A stretch of 64,000 bases of DNA from contig NIVC01000946.1 in assembly GCA_002269645.1 (NCBI GenBank), forward strand, positions 186,001-250,000, written 5' to 3'. The position numbers and the translations under genes are program-made. This document shows, in pieces, positions 3,401 to 36,400 of this stretch. The DNA comes from Macrostomum lignano (lineage: Eukaryota). Below the pieces are notes generated by a model. The model did not search any database. It was given only the letters and a program-made list of their open reading frames with translations, and was not told the DNA's origin. Numbering within the stretch: position 1 is the stretch's first letter; each line of letters opens with the position of its first letter.

Positions 3401-6400
3401 TCGAAAACTGGACCTCCTGCTTTGAGTGGAACTACCCGGAACCGATGCCCAGCTCAACAGACTTCTACGTCACCTGCCACGTGGAGACAGCTGCTCGATA
3501 TTATGTAATCTTGAGGAGCGCAGCCATTGGAACATTGAAGATTAGCTATGTCACTCTGGTTGGAGATGAAGGTGAGATGGCCTGTCATACGGACTAACAG
3601 ATGGAGATAGATAGACAGACATACAGACAGACAACTCTTGTTATAGTTTAAAATCGCTTAATGCAGTATGCATTATTAAGTTGGCAAAAGCAGTCATTGA
3701 CAACCAACGCTCGCTCCCCTCAGTTCCGGAAATCGGTTCCAAGCTGCAAAAGTTCATTCCGTCCAGATTTCCTCGACAATTGATAGCGGAAGCCGTACAG
3801 AACGGCAACCGGATGGAATTTCACCTGCGCATCAGAACCGCTTCCGTGATGCTGTACTTCTCTGAGTTCTACGAGCAGGCGGACATAATGACTGGAGTGA
3901 GTGCTCCTCAGAGTTAGACAGTATATATACAAAAAGTTCCAAGTTACAATTTTGATTCAGGATGACTATTGCGCCATTTATTGCGTTCAGGCGTAATTTT
4001 ACGACGCACTTACTTGACTTAGCTGCAGGGGGTTCCATTCAATGCACAGATATCTAGACTTGAATCATTAATCAATTGGCCACGGGCCATTGGCTTGCAG
4101 TCAGCCTATCTTTTGAAACCAGATTGAAACGTACGGCGGGCCGCCCGCCGAGAATGTCTGTGACTTTGGAGTACCTTGGCCTGCTTAAAGTACGTTTGTG
4201 CATTTCGATTAGGCAAGAAAATCGTGTCTTTTAAGTGATTGCATCAATGTGAAGGTCTGGAAAGTCTGCCAGGCTGATGAAGAACGATTGAAGAGATGGA
4301 TCGTAGTCAATGCAAACTCGAGCGAGTGCTTTTTTCATCGAGAGCACTGAAAAAGCAAAAAAACTATCGTTTCCAAAAGAGTCGTTGAACATATTGACGA
4401 TTCTGAATGCTGACATTTTACATGCATGGCTAAAGAAGAAGGGGTTTTCTCACTTGCGAATCAGTCATTCTGCCTTTATAGATTATATGTACTACTTGGC
4501 TTCCCCGATCCCCTTCCACCAGACCAGGTACGAGGTGGTCATCACCTGTAACGGCAGCCACGCGTTCCTGGCCGCAAATCCGGCCGTTCGTCGTGGCGAC
4601 CTCTTCGGCGCCAATCTGCAGACGCTCGCCGCCCTGGCGGTGTTGGAGTCGGCCCGGCTGCCAGTCCAGTGCGACGACTTCCTGCGCACCTCGACAGCCT
4701 GGAGCGGCGAGCCGCCAGTTCAGGTGGCCATCGAGATCGAAGGACAAACGTTGGCCAGACTGCAAGCACCACTGAACAGCAGTTTGAATGTCAGCAATGT
4801 TGCTTACGTTGGGGTGGACTCTGAGCACCAGGCTGTACTGTTGATTAATAAAACCGGTAAGAATCTCGATTAACTCCTTACTTTCTCATATAGATAATTT
4901 ATGAGAGCTTTAAGCAAGACTGCAGGGTTTTGAGCGCTGAGCAGTCTCGTTTCGCTTGTGTGTTCAAAACAAGCGCTCGATACGGACGCGCACAGGTAAA
5001 CTCAGACATATGTGTATCAACAGCGGCCCTGACTTTCTCGTTGTCAGACCATGTGCTACATACTACTAATGTACATATCATGACAATCCTCAATGATTTT
5101 ACCTTTCAGGCCAAAGAAGCCTAGGATTTTGGAGCCCAGTAACCGCCAATGGGCCTGACAGTGCCAACGGGTTCCGTGAATACATTCAGGTGCGAATGAA
5201 TTTTGCTCAGCGAATCACGAGTGCTTTACCATGGCATTGCAGACAGTCTGAAGTCTAGAAATTTTTCCTTTCGTGGTTGCCATTTACAGGCCAGCTTCCC
5301 GAAGTTTGTCACGGCCTTCATCCTGTCGATGCAGAGCGGCACAGGTAGATTTGATGCTGGCAGCAGCTGGGCATCGAATGTGAAGAAGGTACAGCTGGCC
5401 TACAGTAACAACGGACTGCACTTTGAGCACTACATTCACGTGAGCAGTAGTATAGCTTTATTTTGGGAAATTTATACAATCTACGAGGCAGAATGACGGG
5501 TTCAAGAAGCTGTGCGTTTGCAGTTAGTTGCCTAGAAAAAGACGGTGCTAGAAGCCACAGCCAGGCAATGTACAGTGTGAAATGAGGAGTGAAGATGAAG
5601 AAGGCGAATTTCACTGAGTTCGCTTTTAGCTGTCCTGTTCGCACTTAAAATTCCGTTAAAACCGACAGAAAATCCGCGGCCCATTGGCTGGCGATTTTGT
5701 CACCAGCTACCGCCTGACCCCGGAGGTGACGGCCAAAGCCTATCGCGTTTATATCGTGGATTTTACTAACAGGATCGAGTTTCGCTGGATGCTGTACGGC
5801 TGCTGGAACTGTGAGTTTTTTATTTATTTTATCGTTCAAATTTTCAGCAGAAATGCAGATCTATAATCGAATTTTATCTTCGTTTGTTGTCATGACAACT
5901 TAGCCTAACCAAAGCCCCATACAGAGGGGCCAGCTGACAAACCCAACGTTTCACAAAATTCCAAGAAAGCATTTTATTTCACAAACCCATGGTCTGAAAC
6001 CCAGGCAAAGTAGCTCTCGGAACCTTCAGTTCAGTTCAGTTCAGTTCAGTTCAGTTCAGTTCAGTTCAGTTCAGTTCAGTTCAGTTCAGTTCAGTTCAGT
6101 TCAGTTCAGTTCAGTTCAGTTCAGTTCAGCGAGAAGCTAGAATCGAACCCAATTAACTTTAGCGCAAGAGTCTGACCTGTTACCAAGGTGCTACTTTGCC
6201 TACCTGTTAAGCACTTGAGCTCTGATCAGTAGCTCGACGGAGTTGAAAGCTTTACGTACCTTCTTTGAAAGTTAGAGTTTTTAAAATAAAACCTCTTACC
6301 TTCAAACAGCTTCCTATAATGATTTGAGTCCGCCGCCTCAGCTCATCTCTGGTCATCAGACAGCGGTGAGCTCAACTCCCTACTCAACATACTATGCCAA

Positions 6401-9400: not shown

Positions 9401-12400
9401 TCTCATTAAATCTACCTCATCCACCACGTCCCATAAAGATCTCATACAGATCCCACACAGATCCCACACAGATCCCATACAGATCCCATACAGATCCCAC
9501 ACAGATCCCACACAGATCCCACACAGATCCCACACAGATCCATACAGATCCCACACAGACCCATACAGATCCCACACAGATCCATACAGATCCCACACAG
9601 ATCCATACAGATCCCACACAGATCCACACAAATCCCACACAGATCCCACATAGACCCACACAGATCCATACAGATCCCACACAGATCCACACAGATCCCA
9701 TACAGATCCCATACAGATCCACACAAATCCCACACAGATCCCACACAGATCCCATACAGATCCCACACAGATCCACACAAATCCCACACAGATCCCACAT
9801 AGACCCACACAGATCCATACAGATCCCACACAGATCCACACAGATCCCATACAGATCCCATACAGATCCACACAAATCCCACACAGATCCCACACAGATC
9901 CCATACAGATCCCACACAGATCCACACAAATCCCACACAGATCCCACACAGACCCACACAGACCCATACAGATCCCACACAGATCCACACAGATCCCATA
10001 CAGATCCCACACAGATCCCACACAGACCCATACAGATCCCACACAGATCCATACAGATCCCACACAAATCCCATACAGATCCCACACAGACCCACACAGA
10101 TCCCACACATCCCATCCTTGCAAACCGGCTTCACCCAAACAGTAATCAACAATGTTCCCCAGCCATTCCTCCCAGGTCCCAGCTCAAGAGACTCGGTCCC
10201 GCATTCTCTCCACAGTTTGAGACCAGCAATCGGCAGGAGCGCTTCATCCTGCCCAGCCTCCTGCAGCCGGTGTCGCTGCGGCTGAACCTCATCTCCGGCA
10301 GCCTCCTGCCCAGCCAGGTCACCACTCTGGGCCGGCCGCTTAGCAACTGCCCTCTGGGATTTGTTCCCCATTTCGATGTCTGTTTCCGGCTGGTGACTGT
10401 GCAGGCCAGATGGGCTGAGGCCTTGGCCCACTGCCAGTCGGCTTACACCTGGGCTGGCGGGCGAGGCACCCTGTTCCAGCCGAAGGACCCGATGAAGCTA
10501 TCGTTTCTAGCCAAATAGTGAGTGGCTCTGGGTGTCGGATTTTTGGGTATTTGAATATGGGAGCGTACACGTGAATGTCTGAGCTTCTATGTGAATGTCT
10601 GAGCTTCTATGTGAATGTCTGAGCTTCTATGTGAATGTCTGAGCTTCTATGTGAATGTCTGAGTTTCTATGTGAATGTCTGAGCTTCTATGTGAATATCT
10701 GAGCTTCTATGTGAATATCTGAGCTTCTATGTGAATGTCGAGCTTCTATGTGAATGTCTGAGCTTCTATGTGAATGTCTGAGCTTCTATGTGAATGTCGA
10801 GCTTCTATGTGAATGTCTGAGCTTCTGTGTGAAAAGCGGAGCCTATATTCGAATTGGTGTGAAATTTTGGGGCAGAAATTGTCATCTCTCGAATTTCTCA
10901 CCCCAGCTACTCCTGGCGGCTGCACGTGGGCATTCGTCGCGACCCGGCCAGCGGAGGCTGGCAGTGGCTGGACGGCGATCCCATGCCTTCGTCGGCCTGG
11001 GTGCTCGACCAGCCCGGCGACCTGTTCGGCGCCTGGGACGCCGCTGCGGCCGGCCTGACTGCCCTGGCCTCGGATTCAGTGCCGCTGTACTTTGCCTGCC
11101 AGGTGCCGCTGTACACCGCGCCAGGCGGTGAGTGCCAGGTGTACATTTTTTATTAGGAGCTGTACATTATCCAATGGTGAGCTGTACATTATCCAATGGT
11201 GAGCTGTACATTATCCAATGGGGAGCTGTACATTATCCAATGGGGAGCTGTACATTATCCAATGGGGAGCTGTACATTATCCAATGGGGAGCTGTACATT
11301 ATCCCTTAGGGAGTTGTACACTATCCAATGGTGAGCTGTACATTATCGAACGGGATGTTGCACATCGATTCTCGTACACTCCCAGATCCCAGCAGCTGCG
11401 CCAGCGGGCCGCTGATGTACTACGGAGAGCCGTACGCTGCCTGCACCGGCTGCAATGACGATTTCGAAGTGTTCACGGAGTCCCTGGATAATCGCTGGGC
11501 CGCTCTGTGGCCGCTGACCTTCATGGACAGTTACTATGGCAACATGAGCATGTGGTACCGCACCAGAAGCACTCAACAGAAGATTCTAGCCAATGTGCAG
11601 CTGTCCACCAGCTGGGCTGCAAGCACTAGCACAGTGACGCACTATTTTACATGCGTCAGACCAGGTCAGTCCAGAGGCATAGGTGTCACAGATATAGGTG
11701 TAAAAGCATTATGTGTCACAGCACTACTACAGGTGTCACAGCACTAGTAAGTGTACAGGTGTCACAGCACTAATACATGTGTCACAGCACACATACAAGT
11801 GTCACAGACTCACAGCACTAGTAAATGTACAGGTGTCACAGCACTAATACATGTGTCACAGCACTAATACATGTGTCACAGCACACATACAAGTGTCACA
11901 GCACTAGTAAATGTACAGGTGTCACAGCACAAATACAGGTGTCACAGCACTAATACAGGTGTCACAGCACTGATACAGGTGTCACAGCACAAATACAGGT
12001 GTCACAGCACTAATACAGGTGTCACAGCACTGATACAGGTGTCGCAGCACTGATACAGGTGTCACAGCACTGATACAGGTGTCACAGCACAAATACAGGT
12101 GTCACAGCACTAATACGGGTGTCACAGCACTGATACAGGTGTCACAGCACTAATACGGGTGTCACAGCACTAATACAGGTGTCACAGCACTGATACAGGT
12201 GTCACAGCACTAATACGGGTGTCACAGCACTAATACAGGTGTCACAGCACTGATACAGGTGTCACAGCACTAATACAGGTGTCACAGCACTGATACAGGT
12301 GTCACAGCACTAATACAGGTGTCACAGCACTAATACGGGTGTCACAGCACTAATACAGGTGTCACAGCACTGATACAGGTGTCACAGCACTAATACGGGT

Positions 12401-15400: not shown

Positions 15401-18400
15401 AAGAGCTCTTAAACTCAGACAAGAAACTTCCCGTCCCGACAACATAATTATCAGCAAATCTGCAGTACGGTCTCAAAGCCAAGTACGCCACCGAATGGAA
15501 CGCATCGGCGGGCGAGGAGGCCTTCAACGATTGGGCATTGTGCGACAGTCTCGAAGTGCCGCTAGCCTCTCTAAGGCAGGTCAGCCTGTCTTGCCCACCC
15601 GGCGGCGTCACTGGGCGATACCTGGCTGTGTTGAAACCGGCGGAGCTCGGCTTTATGCGGTTGGAATCGCTGATGGTTTATGCTGAGGAAGGTGAGTTGC
15701 TGCGGTAGAGAAGTACATGTAGGTCAAATGATTTCCTTCCAAATATTAATGCCTTTTCTGGCCTAGTGCCAAAGTCGGTCACATGTAGCTGCCTATCCAG
15801 GTTTAGTGTCTCAAGTTTGATCACATGTAGCTTTCATGTAGCTGTCTATCCTGGTGTAGGGTTGGTCACATGTAGCTTTCATGTAGCTGTCTATCCTGGA
15901 GTAGTGTCTCAAGGCTGGTACCGTACGTACAGGTTGTGGTCACATTTTCAGTTAACGACCTGGACGACATGGTCCCGAAACGAGTCGAATGGATGCCAGA
16001 CGATGTGATCAGAGCGGCAATGGCCAACAACAGCGTGGAATTCCTGTGCCGGTTTCGGCAGCGCAAACTAAAAGTCTGGTTTACTGACCAGTTCGGCTAC
16101 CTGGAGGCCATGACAAATGTAAGCATGAAGGGTAGTTTATAATCTTTTGAAAAGACAACATATGCTATAAACTGGCCCATATATATATGGCAAGAAATGG
16201 TAGAGAGCCTCACTGCAACGACTTGATGTCACCCAATGAAAACCTTCTAGAAACGCTACGTAATCATTCTGGAAGGCGTCAGTTCTGACACTGTGCAGTT
16301 CGTCGGCGCTCGTATTGAGCACAGAGACTACTCAGTGCCGGAGTCTTTTTACACATTAGCTAACATCAGCGCTAGCCTGGTTGCCAACGCGACCGGAGTT
16401 GCTACGGACGATTTCCAACCGGTTCAGGTCACCTGGCAGCTGTCCGCTTCCGGCATTCAGCTGGCGGTTAGAGTCGCCAATCAACTGGTGGGCGTCTGCC
16501 AGGACTCGAACTTCAGCTTGGCCGCCATCAGGAAGCTTGGCTATTCGAGCGATGCGCCACCCGACGGAGCAACAAGTCTGCAGGTGGCGTTTCCTCAAGT
16601 TCAAAGCTACAAGACAATGGGCTGTCATCGGGAGCCCTACTATTCCGCCACCGAGAGAGTCTATGTACAGGTGAGTTTACGCTGTAGTTAACTTGCTCTT
16701 ACAAGGCAAAGCAACACTAGCAGTAGACAAATACATAAACACGGTTGTTTTTTGTTTATAGCTACGATAGTTTGTCACGCAAAACTATCTGGAATCGGAG
16801 CAATCACACAGGTGCATCCTGGAAAACAAATTTAATGCTCAAATTCATACCGATTTTTGAGTTCTCATTGCTGAAAAAACGATTCTCCAATCACGCCCAG
16901 GTGAGCTTCAGCCGGCCAGCAACGCTAATGTGGATCACCGTTCAGGGTGGCAACGCTAGAAACGTTATATCAGGAGCGACCTATATGACTTACGTCTACT
17001 CGTATGTGCTGTACTTTAGCGAGACTGGCAACTATTGGAGACCATTCCAAGAGCGACTGGTGAGTCGATAACTGCATTCTAATTAACAATTAGTAACAAA
17101 CCACTCGTCGCTTGGATACCGAAAAACTTTTGATCCCAGGAAATCATGGCCAACCGGCACCAGCGCGCGGTGGCCAGTCTGCGCTTCCAGCCCAACCAGT
17201 TGGCCGAGCACCTCCGACTTTATCGAGTTACCGGACAGTCGGTTGGCGAGCTGCGCTTGCAATTGTACGGCTGTCCGGCAGGTAAGCTGACTCGGGGGGG
17301 GGCTGTGGAAGGTCTTATAAATATTGGTATTCTCAAGATATGATCCTTCAGTATTTCGTAGACTGAGTACTTCGTAGGCTGCGTAATTTTTAGGCTGAGT
17401 ATAGATACTCAGCAACATTGAAAAGTCGCCCCCTTTGCCCCAGTGAGCAGTGTCTTTCGACCAGCCTCTATCACCTGGCCAACCATTTTGATATTAAAAA
17501 TGCTTGAAAAAACAATGAAAACCGGGCGGAAGCTTCAATCCATCCAGTCTTCGCCCTCGTCCGCTCTTCCCAATCCCTCCTCACCCAGCCCAACTCTGCG
17601 TCGCGTGGCTAGAATTTACTGCGCACTCTCAAAGGTGGTGACATTTTAGTGTTGTTGATGAGGATACTTAGCAACAGTAAAAAGTAGAAGCTCTAGCGAG
17701 AGGCCAACCGCAAACACGTAGCGAGTGCGTGAATTTCTCTGTCTTTTACTTCAATCGCGAGTGTCACGAAAGTCGCCTCTCGCTAGGGGTGCGAATTTGG
17801 ACTGTTGCTGAGTGGTATCGATATGTGTGAGCTTGCGCAACCAACCACAAAACCCACCTCTCGAACCTCCAAACTGTGCAGACGCGAGCGAAGCCCGCTT
17901 GCGCTCCTACCTTCAGTCGCGCTTCAAACGCGTTCATGTCGACTCCGGCAGCACCGCCGGCCGCGGCAACGACGGCTCCCTTAGCGGCTTCTTCGGCAAC
18001 GGCGGCGTTTACCAGAGCGACATTGAGCAGTACTCAACAGATTACCTGTACTGGATGGTGGACCTCGGCCAGTTCACCTACATAACATTCATCAGGGTAG
18101 TGGATGCCATCGAGAATCTGGGTTAGTCAGTTATAAAATATGCTAGTTCTACATGTATTCAGGGGCTGTGGTGCTGTGGCAAAGTCAGGCATGTGCATTT
18201 TGGCACTGTATGCCTGCCACATCCGAGGGCTGCTGCATACACCTTGTGCAGTGCTGAAGTCTGCGTGCGGGGGTCCTAACTCAGAGCTCAGAGCTGCTAC
18301 CCGATTACAGCAGGGTGCTCCGAAGCTTAGTTCAACTGGCCAATTAATCACTGAGGTTGCCTTAATGAGTAACCAAGGCCAACTCTGCTCAAATTGCAAG

Positions 18401-21400
18401 ACTGGCGGTTGGTGAGCTGGTAACCAACCATCTTAACGTGCTTCCATGTATGTCCCAATGTTTTATGTGCTTATCTAAATGTCCAGCTTGAAATTAACTG
18501 TCGGTACAAATTGTGTGATCACGCGATGCTACTCGAAGTAACCGCCGAACCAGGTCTTCATAGACAAATTATGTTAAACTACGATTGGTCACATCAAGAT
18601 CGGTTGTCAGAGCAACCCCCCTTCCCCTTGTTTCTCAACAGACGCTTACGGAGGTGACGTGTGCAGCACCAGCACATCCGTGTACTCGTACTACGGCATG
18701 CAAAATGTTACGGCAAACGGAATCCCCTGCCAAAATTGGAGCTCGAATTCTCCGCAAACTGTATCTGCCAGGTGCCAAGTAGACACGTACTTTCCGGGAA
18801 CCAACAGGAGCGCTTCTGTGAATTACTGCAGAGACTGCAACGGCAACGGTTATAAAGGCTGCTACACCACAGATCCCGCTGTTCCCTACGCCAGCTGCAA
18901 CATTTTCGCTTGCTCCCGGGACAACATGAAGTTCGGTGAGCAGGGCAAGGTTGGTTTTTAAGTACATAGCCAGTCTGGGTGACACAGATATATATAGGTC
19001 GATTTTTATATGACATAAAGGTCGTAGGCTATTGCTATATTCAGTGCCGGATTGGGGGGGGGGTCGCCACATGCACCCGTGAGTGCAGCAAGGACCATAG
19101 ACTGGCCAAGCTTTTCTTTTGCGTGGTCTTTTAAAGGCTATAAAATCAAGGAAATTTAGATAAACTGAACTGTCGATGGTCCTTGCTGCACTCAGTCAGT
19201 GTGTAATATTTCATTGCCAAACGACCCTATCTGCGATAATCAATGGAATGAGTGCGAGACATTTTGCCATAGACAGGCGCATTACCGCACGCTGACTACC
19301 AGAGAGAACAAGTCATAAGCTTACTAGCGCAAGGAAATGAAATGGAGGCATTAAGCGCGACACCCAAAGCAATAAACATGTTGGATCTGTCCTGGTTTCT
19401 TTGAGTAAATGATCAGCGGTCTAACCAGTGATGAAATCGCGAAGCAAGTCCAACTATGTGATAGAAATTCAGAGATTGAGAAGAAGATCATGTTTGATGA
19501 CTCGGACGAGAATATAGACGGACTAGCTACAATTGAGGAACTTTCTGCGTTGTTGCCGGATACAACTCGATCCATCGACTTCACTGAGTCTGTCGCTGCC
19601 GTCGCTTCGACGACAGACAGGCTTACTGCAAACTGTATTACGGCGAATGAGAGGGTGGAAAACCAGACTACTCTACCAAGTGCAGGGTTTAGATTGGAGT
19701 TTAGCGGCTCGTTCCAGAATTGCACATTTCAGTTTAGGGGAAACTAAGCTTTAGACTAATTTTAACGGCCCCTGGTAAACATGTATGTCCGTTCCTGTTT
19801 GTCCGACATAGTGACACGATGAACTTTGCCATAGGTTGCATGCACTGAAGTGTTGACTCACTAGCAGTGGCGATTGTTATTGACCGGGCTTAGAGATTTG
19901 TATGGTATTGTATTCAACCCCACCCCATGCGCGCGCTTGAATCTGTCTGCACCCACCAGTCCACCACCTCATTGCTAACTAAATCAGCCTAGCTCCCAAG
20001 CGAGCACCTTTTCTCACTCCTGCAATCAAACACTACTGCCTCAGTTATTAAAGATATCACAGAGCCTACTTCAAGTAAAACAGCAAAACGCCATCAACCA
20101 TTGTCACACGTACGCTCGTAAGTGGGCTACGGGCATGGATGAATGAATAGAATGGATTGCTATTCTGGCTCTGGCTATTTTCGTTTTTGACTCTTTTGCA
20201 TCCGGTTCCCCCCCGTGCCTTTTCATTGGTTGATGATTGCCATAGACAATTTTCGGCCTTCGCCCCTTTCTTTCGATGCACAAGCGCTTTCGCTCGTGTT
20301 TTGAAATAAAGGGGGAAGACCTACAAGCACGATTCGAGAGTCGATTCGTCTACAATAAAATCAGTTCTTTGCGCTTGTGCATCGAAAGAAAGGGGCGAAG
20401 GCCGAAAATTGTCTATGGCAATCATCAACCAATGAAAAGGCACGGGGGGGAACCAGATGCAAAAGAGTCAAAAACGAAAATAGCCAGAGCCAGAATAGCA
20501 ATCCATTCTATTCATTCATCCATGGCTACGGGTCGTTTGGGCATATTGTATCGTCATAGACAATGATTAGTTTTAGCCGCTCTTGGCTTAGACTCATTGA
20601 TGTTGCTCAGATGCTATGATGTAGAAGCTCACAAGGAATGCTGACAACTTCCGGCTTACGCATTTGCTTTAAAAATTTCCTTCGAGATTAACAATTTTGA
20701 ATGTACAAACCCAAAAGCCAAAAGCACGTGTTTAAATAACAATTTTTACTCCTTTTTTGTTTCCTTCCGTAGCCTTCCGAAATCGTAGCCAATTATAATT
20801 GGTCAATTTCAATCTCTTTCGCAATTATTATCTAGCGTCAGAAAAGTGCATCATATAGAAGATGATTTAAAGCTTATCGAATCCGGCGAGTGTTACGAAT
20901 ATAAACAATTTTGTGATGCAAATATATTTGTTGCAGTAATAAAACCGTTACAAAATGCAGAGCGTAGTCAAAGTTGCCGTTAAAATAAGCATAAAATTAT
21001 GAATCAATTTTTGGAGAAGCCCAACTCCTTCAAGAGACCAGCATCCAGGTACTTCTTGACGATGCTGTAGAAGCACTTCCTGGCGCAGTCGTCATCCTCG
21101 ATGTCGCACTGGCAGTCGGCCGGCAAGTCGACCAGAACGCGCAGCTTGGCCAGGGTGGCAGTCAGCTCGGCAGGCTTCAAGAATTGGGCCAAGAGGTCGC
21201 AGTTCTGGTCCTCGATCAGGCACGGCTTGAACCCAGCCTCGACGCCCTGGATGGCAGTCTGTGCAGCGGCTTTGGCGGTCTGAAGTTTGAACATTTCAAT
21301 GCACAAAGGGTCAAGTTTCAAGGCAACGCCTGAAAGCATTTCTAATAATTAGATCGGTAATAAATGCACTGTGCGAACCTCTGCATCGCCTCCCATGGAC

Positions 21401-24400
21401 AGAGAGATCCAGGCCGCACTGACGGCAGAGGACTTCACCAGGTAGTTGTACACGCAGCCGCGCAGACACTTCGCCTCGGAGAGGTCGCAGCTGCACCGAT
21501 CGGTCAGTTCAATGCTCCGGAAAATCTTAAGCACGATCCGGCCTCGTCTGAAGTCCAGGGAACCGTCCGGAGGGCAGTTGAAGTCTTTCAGGATGCAGTC
21601 TTGCAGTGACGCCGCCAGCCCCTCGTCTGCCAAAGACTCCAGGTGCACCAGGTGCGCCGAGCGGCGATACAACGCATGTGCCATTGGCGAGCCAGAGACT
21701 GGCTCCTGACCAAGGAAGCAAGCAAGAGGGCCGTGACAAACCAACATCTCTCACTCGTGCATGCATCAGTCTAGAAAGCAGTTTATTTAATAGCTAGAAT
21801 AAAAAATGACCAGAAAATACTCACAGTATCATTAAAGCCGACAGCGATAAGCAAGAACAGAGACAGGTATCCGCGCATGGTCACTGATGGAGCACCTTGG
21901 ACTAGAGCCTAAAAACTGCCGGTGTACAAGCGTAGATATTGACTGGAGCGGCTGACTGTGCGTGGCTGGCTGACTGCTGAGTGGGCCAGTTGTATTTATA
22001 CACTTTCCTTAACGATAGAATCTTGCGTACTCCAACTGCTCGCTCAAATACAGCCCCCCCCATTACCTGGTGAAAAACCCAGAAAAAACCCTGCTGTCTG
22101 CTGAATAAAAGCTTAGCTTAGCTAGTCTCATCTCTGTGCCCTAACACTGTGTTGGAGCTTCTCTCTGCGCTGATTGGCTGGCGGCCTCGCGTGAAACGTA
22201 AAACTTTTCTACCCTTGTCGCACCCACCCCAAAACCAGCTAGAGGGCAAGAGCACTCTGCCCTCTAGCTGATGGGCTATTGGTTATACGCTCGTAGCCAA
22301 CTTTTGCAATTGGTCAGCCAGAACCAGTACTCGGTTTGCCGGTTTGGCGGAGCGAAGGATGCTCTACAAACTGAACATTTTTACCTTCTCAATCAACAGA
22401 AAATAAACTATACAAACTATTTAAAAGCTTGCTCATTTTGGAACGGCAGAGATTCGTTTTGAAACAGTTTAAATTAATAAACTTGTTTTTAACAGACCAG
22501 TAATTTAACAGACGTATAGTTTTTACGATCTCGATATACTTTTGGGACGAATAAGTAACTACGAGACTTTTTACTTTCTCCAAAGTCCTCTTGGCTCAGA
22601 GACACGAAACGAGGGTTTTCTCTTGGTAAATTAACACCCAGACTTACTAATACTCATATATTATCAGCGCTGACCACTGTAAAAAATGGTTTTGCTAATT
22701 TGAAGACTTTTATATTACTGTCAGTAACAAAGGAGAGTTTTTTTACACATAACACAAAGCACTTTGTATTTGAAAATTTTGGTTCATTGCTTTTTTTCAA
22801 ATGATTCGTCGATTCTAACATTCATTCGACAGACTACGAAGAGCTGGACTATGCTGAGATTATCCTAGCAAACGCTTCGTCTCCGACTGACTCGAGCGTA
22901 GAGGTGTTGGCTAAGCGAGGCCAAGGCTACATCAAGGAGCACTTCTGGAGCGTGGAGACGTTTCGGGTAAAAAATCAGCTGGTATTCTGACTGACTCACA
23001 AATAAAACTACTGTAAATTGATGTGAAAATAAACCTGATTTTAACTTTAATAGATTGCTCGATTTGCCGGCGTCAGAAAGTCCACGTTCTATCGCCGACG
23101 CTTGTCATTTGCTGAGTTTGAGGTGTACGGCTACCCGAGAGTCTGTACGTATCCTGTTGGAATAGACTGAGTATTCCGTAGACTGAGTATTCCGTAGACT
23201 GAGTATTCCGTAGACTGAGTATTCCGTAGACTAAGTATTCCGTAGACTGAGTATTCCGTAGACTGAGTATTCCGTAGACTGAGTATTCCGTAGACTGAGT
23301 ATTCCGTAGACTGAGTATTCCGTAGACTGAGTATTCCGTAGACTGAGTATTCCGTAGACTAAGTATTCCGTAGACTGAGTATTCCGTAGACTGAGTATTC
23401 CGTAGACTGAGTACGCTCGTATTCCGTAGACTGAGTATTCTATAAACAGCATAAACCTGATTTAACTGTATCTATTACCACATCTGACTTAAACCTCTAA
23501 ATAAACTCACACAGCCGATCCTCAGTTGTTGAGCAATCCAGTCGGGCTGGAGGATGGTGCAGTGCAGGTAAACCAACTGGATCTCAGCGACTCTCTCGGG
23601 CCATCAACAATGGTGCCAACTGAGCACGCGGCCACCTGCATGCTGCGGTTGAATGCCAAGCAGCTGCCGGGACTTCCACCGGCGATGTACTTTTATAAAG
23701 GTGGATATTTTATAAATGTGGGAGGGTGCTGTAGCCCAGTGGTTAGAGCGTCGGACCCCCGATCCCACTGGAACACTTTGTGTCCTTGAGCAAGACAGTT
23801 AACTCTGAATTGCTTCAGTTCACCCAGCTGTAAAAAGGGTTACCAGCATTAGCTGGGATAATTGAGGGTGTGTGGCGACCTCCCAGTCCTTGGACTGAAC
23901 AGCCGTACGCAGCCTTCAGATGCGCCGCGCGATAGCTGCGGCTGAGCTGTCGGTTGCACATCTGGCCCAATGTGTACAGATGTAATCAATTATAAATTAA
24001 TTGGTACTATTAATATAGGTGGAAAAAATCGATGCTATCTAGAGATTGAGTTTCAATTGACTAAACACGAGCCTCCAAAACACTTCAGTTGGCATCACGC
24101 TCGACATCAACCTGCCAGTCCGGCATCGGATAAGCGGTCTGGTGACGCAGGGAGGCGGTTTGTTCGACAGCACAAATAAGTGGATGGCCTACGTGACCGA
24201 GTTCCAGCTACTGTACGGCGACGATCCCAGAGTTTTGCGGCCGTACAATTCATTTTCTACTGGCAGTAGTGTAGAAAGCATCGTAAGTATTAGTTTATTC
24301 TAATTGAGACTAAAATTTCCACTATCGTTTAAACATGGCAAGAGATGGTCGGCTTCAACTCTTAAAATGTTGTTGTTATTATTATTATTATCAATTTTGC

Positions 24401-27400
24401 TAGAATTTCTGCTGTATAGATGTTTCTATCTTCTTAAACAGGAAGTGTGGAACTTCACTATCTTCCCCCCCCCCCACATGGCACTGTGGGCAGGTCCTGT
24501 TCTCGTAAGGGATCTTTGCTTTCGCAGTCCTCATTGCCTCGCAGGCCAGTTTTTGGATTGCTAGTCTAAACTGTGACAGGGTGCACTTTAGTTCTGGATT
24601 GGAAACTTATAGGACATGCTTTTCGGTTGAGTAGTGCCTACATGTCATGAATTAGAATGTCACATTCTCATCCAATCCGCAGCACAATTTTGCTGGCCAA
24701 CAAAACGACGAGATCGCGCTCCGGTTCGACCTGCCAGTCCCGATATTGGCCAAGCTGGTCAGATTCGTGCCAACCAAGTTTGTGAACTCGCTGGCTCTGC
24801 GACTGGAGATTCTCGGCTATCCAGAGGGTGAGGTCCACCTCCCTGCCTGGTCTGATTCAATGTACACTCAGTGAATGTACTGACCAACGGTCTTGGGTAG
24901 AGCAGGTGCAGGCGAACTCCGGCCCGTGGGCCACATGCAGCTCGCAAAGCCTCTCTATCCGGCCCGAGGGTCCTTTGAAACTTCACAATAGCAATCCGAC
25001 CCGCTCAAGATTCGTGTCTCTTGTCAGATCTCTTCTCTTTAATCTCCTCTCTCTTCTCTCCTCTCTCCTCTCTCTTTTCTCTTCTCTTCTCTCCTCTCTC
25101 CTCTCTCTTCTCTCTTTTCTCTCCTCTCTTCTCTCTTCTCTCTCTTCTCTTCTCTCCTCTCTCCTCTCTCTTCTCTCTTTTCTCTCCTCTCTCTTCTCTT
25201 CTCTCCTCTCTCCTCTCTCTTCTCTCTTCTCTTCTCTCCTCTCTTCTCTCTTCTCTCTTCTCTCTCTCCTCTTCTCTCCTCTCTCTTCTCTCTTCTCTTC
25301 TCTCCTCTCTCCTCTCTCTTCTCTCCTCTCTCCTCTCTCCTCTCTTCTCTCTTCTCTCTCTTCTCTTCTCTCCTCTCTTCTCTCTTCTCTCTCTTCTCTT
25401 CTCTCCTCTCTTCTCTCTCTTCTCTCTTCTCTTCTCTCCTCTCTTCTCTCTTCTCTCTCTTCTCTTCTCTCCTCTCTTCTCTCTTCTCTCTCTTCTCTTC
25501 TCTCCTCTCTTCTCTCTTCTCTCTCTTCTCTTCTCTCCTCTCTTCTCTCTTCTCTCTCTCCTCTTCTCTCCTCTCTCTTCTCTCTTCTCTTCTCTCCTCT
25601 CTTCTCTCTTCTCTCTCTTCTCTTCTCTCCTCTCTTCTCTCTTCTCTCTCTTCTCTTCTCTCCTCTCTTCTCTCTCTTCTCTCTTCTCTTCTCTCCTCTC
25701 TTCTCTCTTCTCTCTCTTCTCTCCTCTCTTCTCTCTTCTCTCTCTTCTCTTCTCTCCTCTCTTCTCTCTTCTCTCTCTCCTCTTCTCTCCTCTCTCTTCT
25801 CTCTTCTCTTCTCTCCTCTCTTCTCTCTTCTCTCTCTTCTCTTCTCTCCTCTCTTCTCTCTTCTCTCTCTCCTCTTCTCTCCTCTCTCTTCTCTCTTCTC
25901 TTCTCTCCTCTCTCCTCTCTCTTCTCTCTTCTCTTCTCTCCTCTCTTCTCTCTTCTCTTCTCTCCTCTCTCCTCTCTTCTCTCTTCTCTCTCTTCTCTTC
26001 TCTCCTCTCTCCTCTCTCTTTTCTCTTCTCTTCTCTCTCCTCTCCTCTCTCCTTTCCTATTTTATCTCTCCTCTATTCTCATTTATTTCCTCGCCTCTCC
26101 TTTATCTTCTTTCTCTTCTCTCTTCTCTATTACTTCTCCTCTCCTGCCGACCTCTAGGGTAGAGAAAAAACACAAAGACACCTCCGGTGCCCTAATCAGT
26201 GTACAATAACGAATTTACGCTTGACTAAAGGGACAGAGAGAATCCGTATTGGCTTTCTTCAGTGTACTTAAACCCCCCCAATGCGGATCGCTTTTAAAGA
26301 CCTCGAAATAATATTTAAATCAGCAGAAGCTACCCCTCTAGCATAGTGACACAGAAGATAAGCAACATCATAGGTGATTCAAAAACGCATGAAGGAAAGC
26401 CTACTCAAGTATGGACAATTGCCGTCTCTCGTTAGTGGTGGTATGCATACCTCATGATCAAAGGGTAGAGTCTCGGGTGTCGATAGAATTCATAATTCCT
26501 TTCCAGATTGCCCGGTTGTTCCGTCGGATCACGTGACTAGCCAGTCGGCGAGCGGGCAGACAGTCAGTCTGCAATTGAAAAGGTACTTTTGGCTAACGGG
26601 ATTTCAGCTGCCAGCGAGTGGCGGAGACACAGCGGCGGCCGTTCTACTGCAGTACAGAAACCTGAGAAATAGCAGCTTGACAAACCTCACTGTCAATGGA
26701 GTGCCTTATGTGAGTCAAAGCATAGCACAGGGGTCGGCAAACTACGGCCCGCTCAATATCTCTTCTCAGCTCTCTTACCTCCACTCTCCTCTCTTCTATC
26801 TCCCTGTCTCTTCTCTCATCTCCTCTCTCGCCTTTCCTCTCTCCTCTCCACTATTTCCCCTCTTTTCCTCTCTCATCTGGCCCACAGTCATTAGCTAGGC
26901 TCTTATCTTGCGGCTTGCCAACCCCTGCCATAGTGTCAATATTAAATCGTGTCTTTCTTCGACGCCCCAGGTATTCAAGCTGATCTATGGACTCAACCAG
27001 TCGTTTCCAAGATCGGTACTCACCAATGAGCTGCATCTGATATTTTTGAATAGTTCGACGCCAGCGTCTACCGGTGTTAGCATTCGAGGCTGCCTTCAGT
27101 ACGAAGGTGAGCACTGGGAGAGGCACGGGTCAATCTGGCAATGCTGTTCCCTCACTTGAAGTATGCTCATAGGAGTATTGTATTGAATATAGTAGTACGT
27201 GCATGAAAGTAAACAAAATGGATTGCTAATCTATCCGATATGCACGTGGGCAGAGCACCACGAGAACCAACCCCAAGGCACAGAGAGTGTACATGCCTGA
27301 GAGTGTACATGCCTGAGAGTGTACATGCCTGAGAGTGTACATGCCTGAGAGTGAACATGCCTGAGAGTGAACTTGCCTGAGAGTGTACATGCCTGAGAGT

Positions 27401-30400
27401 GTACATGCCTGAGAGTGTACATGCCTGAGAGTGTACATGCCTGAGAGTGTACATGCCTGAGAGTGTACATGCCTGAGAGTGTACATGCCTGAGAGTGTAC
27501 ATGCCTGAGAGTGTACATGCCTGAGAGTGTACATGCCTGAGAGTGTACATGCCTGAGAGTGTACATGCCTGAGAGTGTACATGCCTGAGAGTGTACATGC
27601 CTGAGAGTGTACATGCCTGAGAGTGTACATGCCTGAGAGTGTACATGCCTGAGAGTGTACATGCCTGAGAGTGTACATGCCTGAGAGTGTACATGCCTGA
27701 GAGTGTACATGCCTGAGAGTGTACATGCCTGAGAGTGTACATGCCTGAGAGTGTACATGCCTGAGAGTGTACATGCCTGAGAGTGTACATGCCTGAGAGT
27801 GTACATGCCTGAGAGTGTACATGCCTGAGAGTGTACATGCCTGAGAGTGTACATGCCTGAGAGTGTACATGCCTGAGAGTGTACATGCCTGAGAGTGTAC
27901 ATGCCTGAGAGTGTACATGCCTGAGAGTGTACATGCCTGAGAGTGTACATGCCTGAGAGTGTACATGCCTGAGAGTGTACATGCCTGAGAGTGTACATGC
28001 CTGAGAGTGTACATGCCTGAGAGTGTACATGCCTGAGAGTGTACATGCCTGAGAGTGTACATGCCTGAGAGTGTACATGCCTGAGAGTGTACATGCCTGA
28101 GAGTGTACATGCCTGAGAGTGTACATGCCAGACGATTAGAAAGTCAGGGCCGCTGTACACCCTGCGTGAGCGTGTGCGTGCCTGCGTACAGTATTGGCGC
28201 GATTGCATGCGCTCAGCAGTCAGCGGAATGAGCAGAATTGCCGTCAGCGCTGGTTGTGCTGGACGATGTCGCCGAAGGCGTCGCAATTACGGCCGAGGCC
28301 ACCCACCCAACCTCCTGCCAGACTGTCCGTTCGGCTTCTTCCGGCACAAGTTCAGCTGCTTCTGGGCGCCCATGCCGCTGAACAGCACCAAGCAGTACCC
28401 GCACACGGTGGCGCCTCCCCTGGTGGCCAAATCCATTTGCGAATCGATTTCCTGGAACGGCAGCGGCCACCTGGCCAGCCCGAGAAGCATTGCCGAGCAG
28501 CAGCTGTTCTACTACCTGTTTTACCATGCTGCCGATGGGTGAGACTGTGCTCAAATTCTGGCTGCTCAATACCTGCTGAACCTTACTTTAGATTTGAATT
28601 AAAAATAGTCGTAGAACATCAGCCACCCAATGAACTATACGAGCTACCATTCTATCGTTAATTGTACCCAATGACCTACCATCCTACCATTAAATGCACC
28701 CAATGACCTACCATCCTACCATTAAATGCACCCAATGACCTACCATCCTACCATCAAGTGTACCCAATGACCTACCATCCTATCATCAAGTGTACCCAAT
28801 GACCTACCATCCTACCATTAAATGCACCCAATGACCTACCATCCTACCATTAAATGCACCCAATGACCTACCATCCTATCATCAAGTGTACCCAATGTCC
28901 TACCATCCTACCATTAAATGCACCCAATGACCTACCATCCTACCATTAAATGCACTTTCTTGTTACTATGCAACTCAACATCTCGATAATCCAGCAGTCA
29001 GAGTCAGCACAAATTTGTGCACATCGACGGCCGCTGGAACGGAACATCCGGCCGCTGGGAATGGTGGGACGGCAGCCCGGTTACCTGGTCATTCTGGCAG
29101 CACAGCTATCCGGGAAAGCAGTGCCTCATGATGTCGCTGGCCAATGGTGGAGCCTGGAACAATATTCAGTGCGACACCTACCTGGCCGCATATCCATTCC
29201 TGTGCGAGGTGGCGGCCTTGAGCACGGGCTACAGCCAAGTGGCCTCGCCAATCAGCATCGTTGGCGCTCCAGTCAACACTTCTCAGGTACTAATGTGCTC
29301 CTCACAAACAGCACCCCACAAACAGCAACCCACAAACAGCACCTCACAAACAGCACCTAACAAACAGCACCTCACAAACAGCACCCCACAAACAGCACCC
29401 CACAAACAGCAACCCACAAACAGCACCTCACAAACAGCACCTCACAAACAGCACCTCACAAACAGCACCCCACAAACAGCACCTCACAAACAGCACCTCA
29501 CAAACAGCACCCCACAAACAGCACCTCACAAACAGCACCTCACAAACAGCACCTCACAAACAGCACCTCACAAACAGCACCCCACAAACAGCAACCCACA
29601 AACAGCACCCCACAAACAGCACCTCACAAACAGCACCTCACAAACAAACAGCACCCCACAAACAGCACCCCACAAACAGCACCCCACAAACAGCACCCTA
29701 CAAACAGCACCCCACAAACAGCACCTCACAAACAGCACCCCACAAACAGCACCCCACAAACAGCACCCCACAAACAGCACCTCACAAACAGCCATCCAAC
29801 CCCCCCGCACTTCCTCACCCGACAGATCCGCTCCACCTCCGGCCCCATCGGAGCCGCAAACGACGGCGACTTCACCCAGGACTGGGCGCTGCGGCCCGGC
29901 CTGTCGCTGGAGTACGCCTACGGGCCCAGCAACTACGATTGGTGGCGAGTGCAGCTGCCTGCCAGCCCCGGCCGGGTGGCCTTCGTCTGGCACTACCTGA
30001 GATCGGATGCTAACGGTGCGTGCTGAGCCTGCTGTCAGTCAAATGTAATGTGATGAGACAGCTCAGCCAGAGGCTTGGCTTGTCGTCCAATTTTCTAACA
30101 TGAGGTCCAAGGCGCTGAGAGTGTACATGCTTGACGATAGGAAAGTCAGGGTTGCTTTACACCCTGTGTAAGCGTGTACCTGCGTACATATCCCTGCGTG
30201 TTCGGTGGTCGGAATTGTTGAATCCCAAGGCTCAAGATGGGGGGACACGCTGAGACGCCAGTGCACAAGTCGAGGGTTAGGGTCAGGCCATTGAGAGGAT
30301 GCTGATTGATGTCTTAGCCTACAAAGCTTCTTGATATCAGGGCCAATACCTGTCTGCTATAGAAACCCTACGACTTTCCAAGACACTGTCAAATAACACT

Positions 30401-33400: not shown

Positions 33401-36400
33401 GATCTCGTATCTCCCAGCGGGGATCTCGTATCTCCCAATGGGGATCTTGTATCTCCCAGTAGAAATATCGTATCCCCCAGCGGGGATCTGACCCTGATTA
33501 CCGACCTGCAGTCTGTACACCAGCTGTGTTTCTCATTGCCTTCACAAACTCCACAGCACCGGACGGCCTGAACCCGGACCCCAGAGCGGCCCAAGTGGCC
33601 GTGTGGCCGCTGGACAATGGCACAGCGGGTGCCAATGCAACTGAGCCGCACGGCCTGCTGTACCGCGGGCTGGTCAGCCCCAATGCCAGCTGGGTGTTTG
33701 GCCCCACCTACAAGACGGGCGGCGGGCTCTACCTGTCCGAGGTCTCGAACTCGAGCCTGCTAGCACCGGGAGGCGTCGCGTTAAACCTCGACTCCCCGGT
33801 GTACACCTTGTGCATGTACTTTTACGTGAACGCCACGTACAATTTTGCCAGCCCATTGCTGCAGTCAACCAACGGCAGTCTGCAGTTCCGAATGACCAGC
33901 CTGGTTGGTTTCGAGCTGAGAGTTCGCCGCCGCTCCGGGCAGTTCGCCACGCTGACTGGCAGTTTCGTGTTCGACCTGCTGTGGCGATTCGTGTGCATCA
34001 CGGTTGACACGGCGGCTGGCAGGCTGCAGATCCTGGACAGGATTAGAATTGAGTTCTCAGCCTCTGTTGCCAACTCCAGCGCCGACCCCATGGAGACAAT
34101 TCACGGGTGAGCGAAGTCCTTCCTGGTGAAAGTTTTTTTGCATTTTCTCAGTATCTCAGCTTCTGGACTTCTCAATTAAAATTGAGAAAGTTTGTCTAGA
34201 TACTCGTAAAATGACCTAAAGAGACAGTAACCGCTTATATTTCGCGAGAAATTTGCTTCTTTGTTCGTCTCATAAAAATTTGCTAAACAGAGTTGTGAAA
34301 TCATCCTCAGCTAAAACTCATATTTATCTAGACTGCTTAATTGATTTGTACTGGTAGCTTTGGTCATTATTCTGCAGTTGGTCCTCAATGTACTTTTGCC
34401 CATATCCAAAATTTCATCACGTGGCTGCTTTCTCATCTTTATGATCCATCCAATTAGTCTGAATCCATCTTGATTTATCTGTATCCGTTGGTGCGAGTAA
34501 ATTCCGCGACCTCCAAGTAGTCACTGCTGCGGCTGGAACAAGCATCGGGATGGTGCGCTGGCTCATCTGGGCGGCGCCAGGGACCGCAAAGCACCACAGA
34601 GGCAAACTTGGGGTCGGGACACTGAACTGCCCGCACTCCCAAGGCCGCCTGGCGGAGAGGAGCTTAAGGTCGAGCTAGTGCTCGACCTTAGCTATGACGT
34701 GATCGAGCTGCAGGAGGCGTCTATCAAGGCTGATCCGGGACTTCTGTGTGAGCATCTTGGCGCTGGACAGACACCCTACTAGACATCGGTGAACCAGAGA
34801 GGCCGTGAAGGAGTTGGAATGCTGATACGATCAGGCTTCAGCAGAGCTGTTGCTGGGTTTCCCTGTCCCCCGGCTACTTCGGGTCGACATCCGGCTTCGT
34901 GGAGGGAACGCTTGCCTGCTCTGAGCGTATGCATCCCCTGCCACTCGTCCTGTTGAGGCTCAAGACTTCTTCGAGCAGCTCTCGGTGCGCGTGAAGGTTA
35001 AAGCGCAGCGCAGACCTGAACACGATTATGTAGAGAACGGCAACACCGGAGCGCTGGAGGACCGCCACGCCGTCAACTGCCGCGCCATCACGTCGCTGGG
35101 TCTGCGGTGCGATCATCGACTCCTCCTCAGCGATATTTGCCTTCGCGATACGGTCCGCCGAAGGCGCTACTACCGCATTGCTAGCGCTCTCATTACTGCG
35201 CTCGGCCGTGGAAGTCAGCCTGCTGTACAACGTTGAGACATGGACCTGACGAACTCGCTCAAGCAACAAGTAGACGCGGCGCACGCTTGCAGGCCTGCTG
35301 CACGCCGCATTCAAGAGCGAGTTTCCAACGCTGCACGGTGCACTGCATCGCTGCACCGGCCTGGTCCGTCCAAGCGATCTGTTGCGCTATAGGCGACTCC
35401 AGCTGGGAGACCCCATCATCCGCGCCGAGTCGTACTGCCTGCAGCCGGCGCATGAGGGGTTGACAGCACGCATTTGGCGTTTCTTCGACTGCTTGCTGCT
35501 GGCGCTGTCGCCGGCGCTCCGGCGGGTCCTTCATTGGCGACTTGGCCCAGAGGCGCGCCCTGCGATGCTGCTTTCTAAAGACCCCGACAACGTATTTTAG
35601 TGCTGTTAGCTAGCCAATAAGAATTCAGAAGTAAAAAGAGACACTACTGAACTGGCAGTAGCTTACTAGCGTATTATTGTGCTTCTCAGTTATAGTGATA
35701 TTTTTCTGCTTTTCTATTAACCTTCTTTTAAGACAGTGCATTCTGTACGAACAGCTAGCTTAGCCATACAGTATCTTATGTATAGAAATACCCCACCACT
35801 CAAAATATTGCAGCCAGCAGCTCCTGTTCGGCAATGGCAGCTCATTCCACCTGTTCTGCGTGCAGCTGTACAAGATGGCATTCACCACGCCTCTGGCGCA
35901 CTGGGCCTACAGGGAGTGCGCACCATACACCAAGTGTAGGTGACGGAATGGACGGAAGGCACAGAGAGTGTACATGCCTGAGAGTGTACATGCCTGAGAG
36001 TGTACATGCCTGAGAGTGTACATGCCTGAGAGTGTACATGCCTGAGAGTGTACATGCCTGAGAGTGTACATGCCTGAGAGTGTACATGCCTGAGAGTGTA
36101 CATGCCTGAGAGTGTACATGCCTGAGAGTGTACATGCCTGAGAGTGTACATGCCTGAGAGTGTACATGCCTGAGAGTGTACATGCCTGAGAGTGTACATG
36201 CCTGAGAGTGTACATGCCTGAGAGTGTACATGCCTGAGAGTGTACATGCCTGAGAGTGTACATGCCTGAGAGTGTACATGCCTGAGAGTGTACATGCCTG
36301 AGAGTGTACATGCCTGAGAGTGTACATGCCTGAGAGTGTACATGCCTGAGAGTGTACATGCCTGAGAGTGTACATGCCTGAGAGTGTACATGCCTGAGAG

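Follow-up and report, generated by a model that had tools for sequence, protein, structure and literature searches.

A predicted secreted protein with two six-cysteine repeats is encoded by a small gene nested antisense in a giant gene of Macrostomum lignano

We analyzed a 64,000-nucleotide (nt) stretch of the genome of the flatworm Macrostomum lignano (assembly GCA_002269645.1, contig NIVC01000946.1, positions 186,001 to 250,000; hereafter the window, whose numbering is used throughout unless another contig is named) and found on its minus strand a small three-exon gene, Mlig026050, lying within an intron of a much larger gene on the plus strand. The start codon is at 21878-21876, with an A at -3, and the TGA stop codon is at 21006-21004. 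Exon 1 (21825..21878, 54 nt) encodes Met1-Thr18 with a signal-peptide-like segment, MRGYLSLFLLIAVGFNDT. Exon 2 (21379..21705, 327 nt) encodes residues 19-127, a low-confidence linker followed by a first cysteine-rich repeat whose core, at approximately 21385-21633, contains Cys55, 62, 89, 91, 98, and 102. Exon 3 (21004..21279, 276 nt) encodes residues 128-218 and the stop, including a second repeat with Cys147, 154, 183, 185, 192, and 196. Both introns are in phase 0: intron 1 (21706..21824, 119 nt) has the form GTGAGT...CAG and a GC content of 0.41, and intron 2 (21280..21378, 99 nt), which falls in the linker between the repeats, has the form GTTCGC...CAG and a GC content of 0.38. Joining 21878-21825, 21705-21379, and 21279-21004 on the minus strand gives a coding sequence (CDS) of 657 nt and a protein of 218 amino acids (aa); in the six-frame list of open reading frames (ORFs), the exons appear as mere fragments within ORFs at 21349-21747 and 21004-21339.

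A reading of the locus made from the DNA letters only (the sequence-only reading) had proposed a complete and novel gene of three exons and 218 aa. Its completeness was borne out, as the spliced product is identical, residue for residue, to the annotated GenBank protein P0004 (PAA54405.1/PAA74457.1; UniRef A0A267FMX1), the "hypothetical protein BOX15_Mlig026050g2/g1" of M. lignano. The novelty stands for the function and the family and falls for the gene model, which is already public as a hypothetical protein, and the present find is in that respect a rediscovery. The junction between exons 1 and 2 is read through in P0004 and also in a second annotated protein, P0001. The Mlig_3_7 annotation was derived from RNA-seq, StringTie/TACO, and de novo transcripts (PMC5730564), and because its gene models are based on RNA-seq, the splice pattern of Mlig026050 has transcript support already, through the annotation rather than through reads.

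The genome of M. lignano is that of a recent hidden polyploid and its assembly is redundant (PMC5730564; PMC10468722), and we compared the window with two further genomic copies of the locus. The copy on contig NIVC01002915.1 (L001) is approximately 95.5% identical to the window across 2.7 kb. Its coding sequence differs at 3 of 657 positions, all of them synonymous, so that the protein is identical, while the flanks differ at approximately 3.3% of positions (17/512 upstream and 7/203 downstream). At the level of sequence comparison, this is a pattern of purifying selection. Intron 2 contains a 27-nt indel relative to the window, and the gene spans 875 nt in NIVC01000946.1 and 902 nt in NIVC01002915.1. 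The copy on contig NIVC01001631.1 (L004) is truncated. It is annotated as the 77-aa partial protein P0001 (Mlig018204g1), which is 96% identical to ours, and a deletion of approximately 2.6 kb (10348-10353 of L004 corresponding to 18942-21534 of the window) has taken away the remainder of exon 2 together with intron 2, exon 3, and the 3' flank, fusing the middle of exon 2 to the end of the Kringle-coding region of the host gene.

The truncated copy is one of the few points in favor of regarding the locus as nonfunctional, that is, as a set of chance ORFs, a decaying pseudogene, or an antisense noncoding RNA modulating the host gene: of the three genomic copies, one lacks the gene's 3' half, a canonical poly(A) signal was not found downstream (no AATAAA or ATTAAA within 600 nt), and the location within a host intron would permit transcriptional interference. 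Against this stand an intact frame over two canonical introns and the two copies with an identical protein and only synonymous changes. The codon composition is likewise that of a coding region, with strong periodicity: the CDS has a GC content of 59% and a GC content at third codon positions (GC3) of 0.77, in comparison with 41 and 38% for the introns and 35% for the 3' flank. Divergent paralogs elsewhere in the genome retain the motif cysteines and the exon plan, and structure prediction became confident once these paralogs were added (see below). We thus consider the nonfunctional alternative very improbable and Mlig026050, almost certainly, a bona fide transcribed protein-coding gene of M. 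lignano.

The arrangement of the two genes was also as proposed by the sequence-only reading, which had placed the small gene inside and antisense to a larger one. In the public annotation, a gene of 4468 aa on the opposite strand spans the locus, with its low end mapping near 15176, and its product lists F5/8C, Kringle, Lectin_C, PKD, Fibrinogen_C, and REJ domains. On the plus strand, a host exon region with a Kringle domain (18659..18961; PF00051, E 9.7e-10) lies upstream of the nested gene, and one with the C-terminal part of a C-type lectin domain (29017..29300; PF00059, E 4e-5) lies downstream, both scoring above the curated cutoffs; the PKD and REJ domains map to 58524-63540. As these domain exons flank the nested gene and the annotated host spans the locus, we place Mlig026050 antisense in the Kringle-lectin intron, early in a giant polycystin-1/REJ-like gene. 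In the six-frame list, no plus-strand ORF longer than 87 aa overlaps the nested gene. In L001, where the nesting is retained, the host exons show 95-100% conservation, and the truncated copy in L004 is likewise nested antisense, within a paralogous host of 3920 aa; the arrangement is therefore older than the duplication.

Several other features were seen along the host (15176-64000, plus strand). An F5/8C-like region was noted by eye at approximately 17812-18126 and another, weak, at 37535-38209, and a weak fibrinogen-C-like region lies at 57299-58150. One coding ORF of the host is uninterrupted for 4.1 kb at 58524-62675. The lectin-bearing ORF (29017-30000, plus strand) runs in frame into an array with a 14-nt period at 29303-29792, which translates as a Thr/Pro/Gln/His-rich and sequon-rich repeat (TAPHKQHLTNSTPQ...) and could represent coding sequence of the host for a mucin-like repeat.

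Upstream of the nested gene, the TATA and CCAAT boxes that had been noted from the letters are present and retained in all three genomic copies. The putative core promoter TATAAATA (21993..22000, minus strand) is a TATA box that precedes the ATG by 122 nt in 3/3 copies, and no ATG occurs between it and the start codon. Three CCAAT motifs (22173..22313, minus strand, with starts at 22177, 22282, and 22313) are found 299-435 nt upstream of the ATG; approximately 0.5 would be expected per 500 nt, giving a probability of at least three of approximately 0.014, and the motifs are kept in L001 and L004. These are plausible promoter elements. Among the CCAAT motifs, we also observed a perfect 13-nt inverted repeat at 22236-22270 (CAGCTAGAGGGCA / TGCCCTCTAGCTG, with a 9-nt spacer), the right arm of which is inexact in the other two copies.

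The encoded protein starts with a segment resembling a secretory signal. Residues 1-18 contain Arg2, a hydrophobic core of 11 residues with a mean Kyte-Doolittle hydropathy of 2.7, and Ala-Val-Gly at positions -3 to -1 of the predicted cleavage site. The paralogs have equivalent N-termini, and one of them is named "Secreted protein" in UniProt, all in agreement with the signal-like sequence noted earlier. Beyond the N-terminus, no segment of the 218-aa protein approaches transmembrane hydrophobicity, and we found no catalytic-looking motif. The predicted mature protein is of approximately 22 kDa with an isoelectric point of 5.1, and its sole sequon, N16, adjoins the predicted cleavage site. 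From these features, we regard the protein as very probably secreted and nonenzymatic. An RRS tripeptide had been proposed as a propeptide cleavage site. We dropped this idea, as the dibasic site is not conserved in the paralogs and is not of the furin type.

The two repeats are homologous, as had been claimed: repeats 1 and 2 match each other by BLASTP with E 3e-7, and hhalign comparison of their family alignments gave a probability of 98.3% and E 1.2e-13 over 82 columns. The cysteines of each are spaced C-x6-C-x26/28-C-x-C-x6-C-x3-C, and the first motif, read earlier as C-x4-NC, is in fact C-x5-N-C (C-x6-C). Across the family, each repeat has the signature E-x3-[KR]-[PD]-C-[IL]-[ILV]-x3-N-C, followed by 26-28 residues and C-x-C-x6-C-x-R-x-C-x-Y. 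The invariant columns are C55, N61, C62, C89, C91, C98, R100, C102, and Y104 in repeat 1 and C147, N153, C154, C183, R194, C196, and Y198 in repeat 2. In repeat 2 of three paralogs introduced below (P0002, P0005, and P0007), Cys4 and Cys5 are jointly replaced, Cys4 with Y or F and Cys5 with A or T. We infer a Cys4-Cys5 disulfide because the two residues have been lost together; pairing of the remaining cysteines as Cys1-Cys6 and Cys2-Cys3 would be a guess.

To place the protein in a family, we searched 1.84 billion representative proteins exhaustively with phmmer and found three matches, all from M. lignano, with E values of 1.5e-13 for P0002 and 1.1e-10 for P0003. A profile search of 5.8 billion proteins also recovered P0007, and neither search returned a relative outside M. 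lignano. The proteins P0002 and P0005 are products of Mlig029205 (g3/g1; PAA82461.1, PAA58127.1), with P0002 corresponding to A0A1I8GAE8; P0003 is A0A1I8G7C1; and P0007 is A0A1I8G9Z9, the one carrying the UniProt name mentioned above. These paralogs are divergent, 23-28% identical to the query. They share with it the signal peptide, the two repeats, and the motifs C-[IL]-[ILV]-x3-N-C and C-x-C-x6-C-x-R-x-C-x-Y, but lack its 25-residue N-terminal extension. The Mlig029205 group differs further in the absence of Cys4 and Cys5 from repeat 2 and in forming a tandem pair on another contig, not nested in the PKD/REJ gene. No paralog lies within the 64-kb window. Apparent relatives in metagenomes (L005-L007) were rejected as bacterial ABC-transporter substrate-binding proteins, matched by chance through MGGDAETA and without the cysteine motif.

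The exon layout is shared as well. On contig NIVC01000469.1, two paralogs lie 7 kb apart, each with one exon for the signal peptide, one for repeat 1, and one for repeat 2, and with GC3 of 0.74-0.75. The same plan holds in both paralogs with readable loci, the introns being 72-83 nt long, in phase 0, and at equivalent positions: P0002 has exons of 66, 264, and 252 nt and introns of 75 and 83 nt, and its tandem neighbor has exons of 63, 267, and 249 nt. Intron 2 of Mlig026050 and that of P0002 lie at an equivalent position, within two residues in the alignment. A long terminal repeat (LTR) retrotransposon ORF (RVT_1, RNase H, integrase) separates the tandem paralogs (L003, 69-796, 2517-5624, and 8001-8740). 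In UniProt, a further paralog, P0006, is modeled as a 1369-aa protein joined to a retroelement ORF, probably as an annotation artifact.

We then predicted the structure of the protein and searched for similar folds. With a five-sequence alignment, AlphaFold2 gave an all-helical model with a predicted local distance difference test (pLDDT) score of 72.7 and a predicted template modeling (TM) score of 0.71; the means of 10-residue blocks were 76-91 over residues 51-200, and residues 19-45 were of low confidence. In the model, helices are predicted at residues 48-58, 70-82, 96-121, 126-148, 163-177, and 190-206. The AlphaFold and Foldseek comparison proposed by the sequence-only reading gave no significant structural neighbor, either in BFVD or in PDB, where the best E was 0.31 and TM at most 0.21 among the matches listed; the query was the whole two-repeat model rather than a single repeat. 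No PDB sequence was matched by the protein, by the family profile, or by the repeat profile. Pfam-A returned nothing for P0002, P0003, P0004, or eight single repeats beyond two weak scores, with E 0.17 for DUF7545 and E 0.11 for Kazal_2, that fell far short of the cutoffs, and thus no match to insect chemosensory (CSP) or odorant-binding (OBP) proteins, plant nonspecific lipid-transfer proteins (nsLTPs), CFEM, or other catalogued helical cysteine-rich domains. The initial impression that no known family could be recognized was therefore upheld. By its sequence signature, the protein represents an undescribed domain family with no counterpart in Pfam, PDB, or Foldseek. More tentatively, the three-helix module of approximately 80 residues may be a new cystine-stapled domain or fold that arose or diverged in Macrostomum, was duplicated, and expanded, and that has a role of its own in this flatworm as a secreted signal or as the carrier of a ligand, for instance, in reproduction or in secretions of the surface or gut; we consider this possible, but short of an even chance.

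One assignment to a known family has a trace in the databases, the automatic UniProt name of P0002 (A0A1I8GAE8) being "Saposin B-type domain-containing protein," which stems from the PROSITE saposin B-type profile. The name would make Mlig026050 a highly divergent saposin-like protein (SAPLIP), in which lipid-interacting saposin B-type domains, in tandem as in prosaposin, solubilize or perturb membranes. Beyond the name, there are general resemblances: SAPLIPs too are secreted, and their all-helical modules of approximately 80 residues with six cysteines and three disulfides (predicted in Mlig026050) can be arranged in tandem in one precursor. The specific comparisons speak against the assignment. 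No SapB_1, SapB_2, or other Pfam model matched the whole proteins or single repeats even at E<=10, hidden Markov model comparison of the family with human saposins A-D by hhalign, with shallow profiles, gave a probability of 0.2%, and no saposin was among the Foldseek PDB matches listed, although saposins are well represented in the PDB. The cysteine spacing given above is also unlike the C-x2-C-x27-C-x10-C-x24-C-x5-C of saposin C, the sequence of which we verified against PDB 2gtg. Given the lack of any match by model, profile, spacing, or fold, and a UniProt name that was not reproduced, we rejected the SAPLIP assignment and regard it as unlikely; a very remote or convergent relationship to saposins is possible.

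The results taken together suggest a mechanism in outline. The gene has a domain-per-exon layout, in which exon 1 would supply the signal peptide and exons 2 and 3 would each supply one module of approximately 80 residues. The signal peptide would direct cotranslational entry into the endoplasmic reticulum and be cleaved near Gly14, three disulfides would lock each six-cysteine helical module, and the acidic soluble product of approximately 22 kDa would be exported and act by binding rather than catalysis. We consider it probable, although well short of certain, that Mlig026050 is a nested gene for a secreted, nonenzymatic protein that is made by a secretory cell type and has a binding or structural role outside the cell. 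Some of the observations weigh against this interpretation. An exact copy of the protein was not seen on short transcript-like contigs, and the structure model has a depth of five sequences only, a single-sequence run giving a pLDDT of 46. The grand average of hydropathy of the paralogs, -0.35 to -0.58, does not mark the family as lipid-binding. We found no site of expression, no detection by proteomics, and no phenotype; the locus identifiers and accessions were absent from the full texts and supplements searched, the large tables among them in part only.

More specific roles can be graded less firmly. Carriage of lipids or other hydrophobic ligands is slightly favored because small helical secreted proteins stapled by cystines most commonly have this task; by this analogy, a carrier role is a tentative suggestion. 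Hydrophobicity and amphipathicity were uninformative as proxies for lipid binding, and composition does not separate a carrier from a gland product. The latter alternative holds that the protein is a fast-evolving reproductive or gland secretion acting on the mate or the environment, such as a constituent of seminal fluid, a signal resembling a pheromone, or part of the mucus, rhabdites, or adhesive. The family appears restricted to one lineage, only M. lignano proteins having been found, its members within a single genome are merely 23-28% identical, and the protein is cysteine-rich and predicted to be secreted, with two paralogs tandemly duplicated; one report (PMC5977470) describes many orphan prostate-limited secreted transcripts in M. 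lignano, in line with such a role. Against it, the three locus identifiers are missing from the complete table of transcripts validated by in situ hybridization (prostate, antrum, and others; Mlig_37v3; PMC7336406, supplement file 16). We consider a reproductive or gland role rather doubtful, and roughly as probable as ligand carriage. A function other than ligand or lipid carriage and reproductive or gland signaling is a serious possibility, if not an even one.

From 1181 to 58080, the window is packed with minisatellite arrays (44 TRF rows), and the same units recur far apart: the 16-nt unit GAGAGTGTACATGCCT is found at 27283-28129 and 35964-36557, a 32-nt unit at 44054-46899 and 54508-55270, and a 24-nt unit at 47565-48517 and 51704-53775. 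Many of the long six-frame "ORFs" are such arrays. An AT-rich block at 44001-56000 (GC 0.35-0.41 in comparison with 0.45-0.58 elsewhere), within the span of the host, consists nearly entirely of tandem arrays. Upstream of the host's annotated low end, we noted two plus-strand ORFs, at 4310-4873 (187 aa, no Pfam match) and 11328-11747 (139 aa), which may be part of a different gene or represent 5' exons missing from the annotation. A scan of the window found no tRNA or Rfam feature.

As a gene, Mlig026050 is ordinary, and its modest value lies in a domain family not described before, which has a clear signature and a candidate disulfide pair. New here are the definition of the family, the domain-per-exon architecture, the proposed Cys4-Cys5 pair, the conserved nesting, and the negative tests against known families. 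If the fold were new, or the protein reproductive or ligand-carrying, the locus would add a case from which to learn how orphan families of secreted proteins originate and diversify once a genome has been duplicated. RNA interference and in situ hybridization are established in M. lignano. Transgenesis has been reported as well (PMC5730564), and with such a tractable model organism the function of Mlig026050 is directly testable.

Compared with known systems, the locus resembles other nested intronic genes of metazoans in being a complete small gene on the opposite strand within an intron of a large host, kept in duplicated copies, and nothing in Mlig026050 is unusual in this respect; no sign of regulatory coupling to the host emerged. 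The protein can be set beside the small helical disulfide-stapled secreted carriers, among them insect CSPs and OBPs and plant nsLTPs, and beside helical six-cysteine water-borne pheromones such as Aplysia attractin and the Euplotes pheromones. Of these, CSPs contain a C-x6-C loop and nsLTPs a C-x-C motif. None of the Pfam models for these families matched, the full cysteine patterns, sizes, and taxa differ, and we claim no homology, but the predicted product of Mlig026050 shares with these proteins the general character of a small, secreted, alpha-helical, and cystine-stabilized class.

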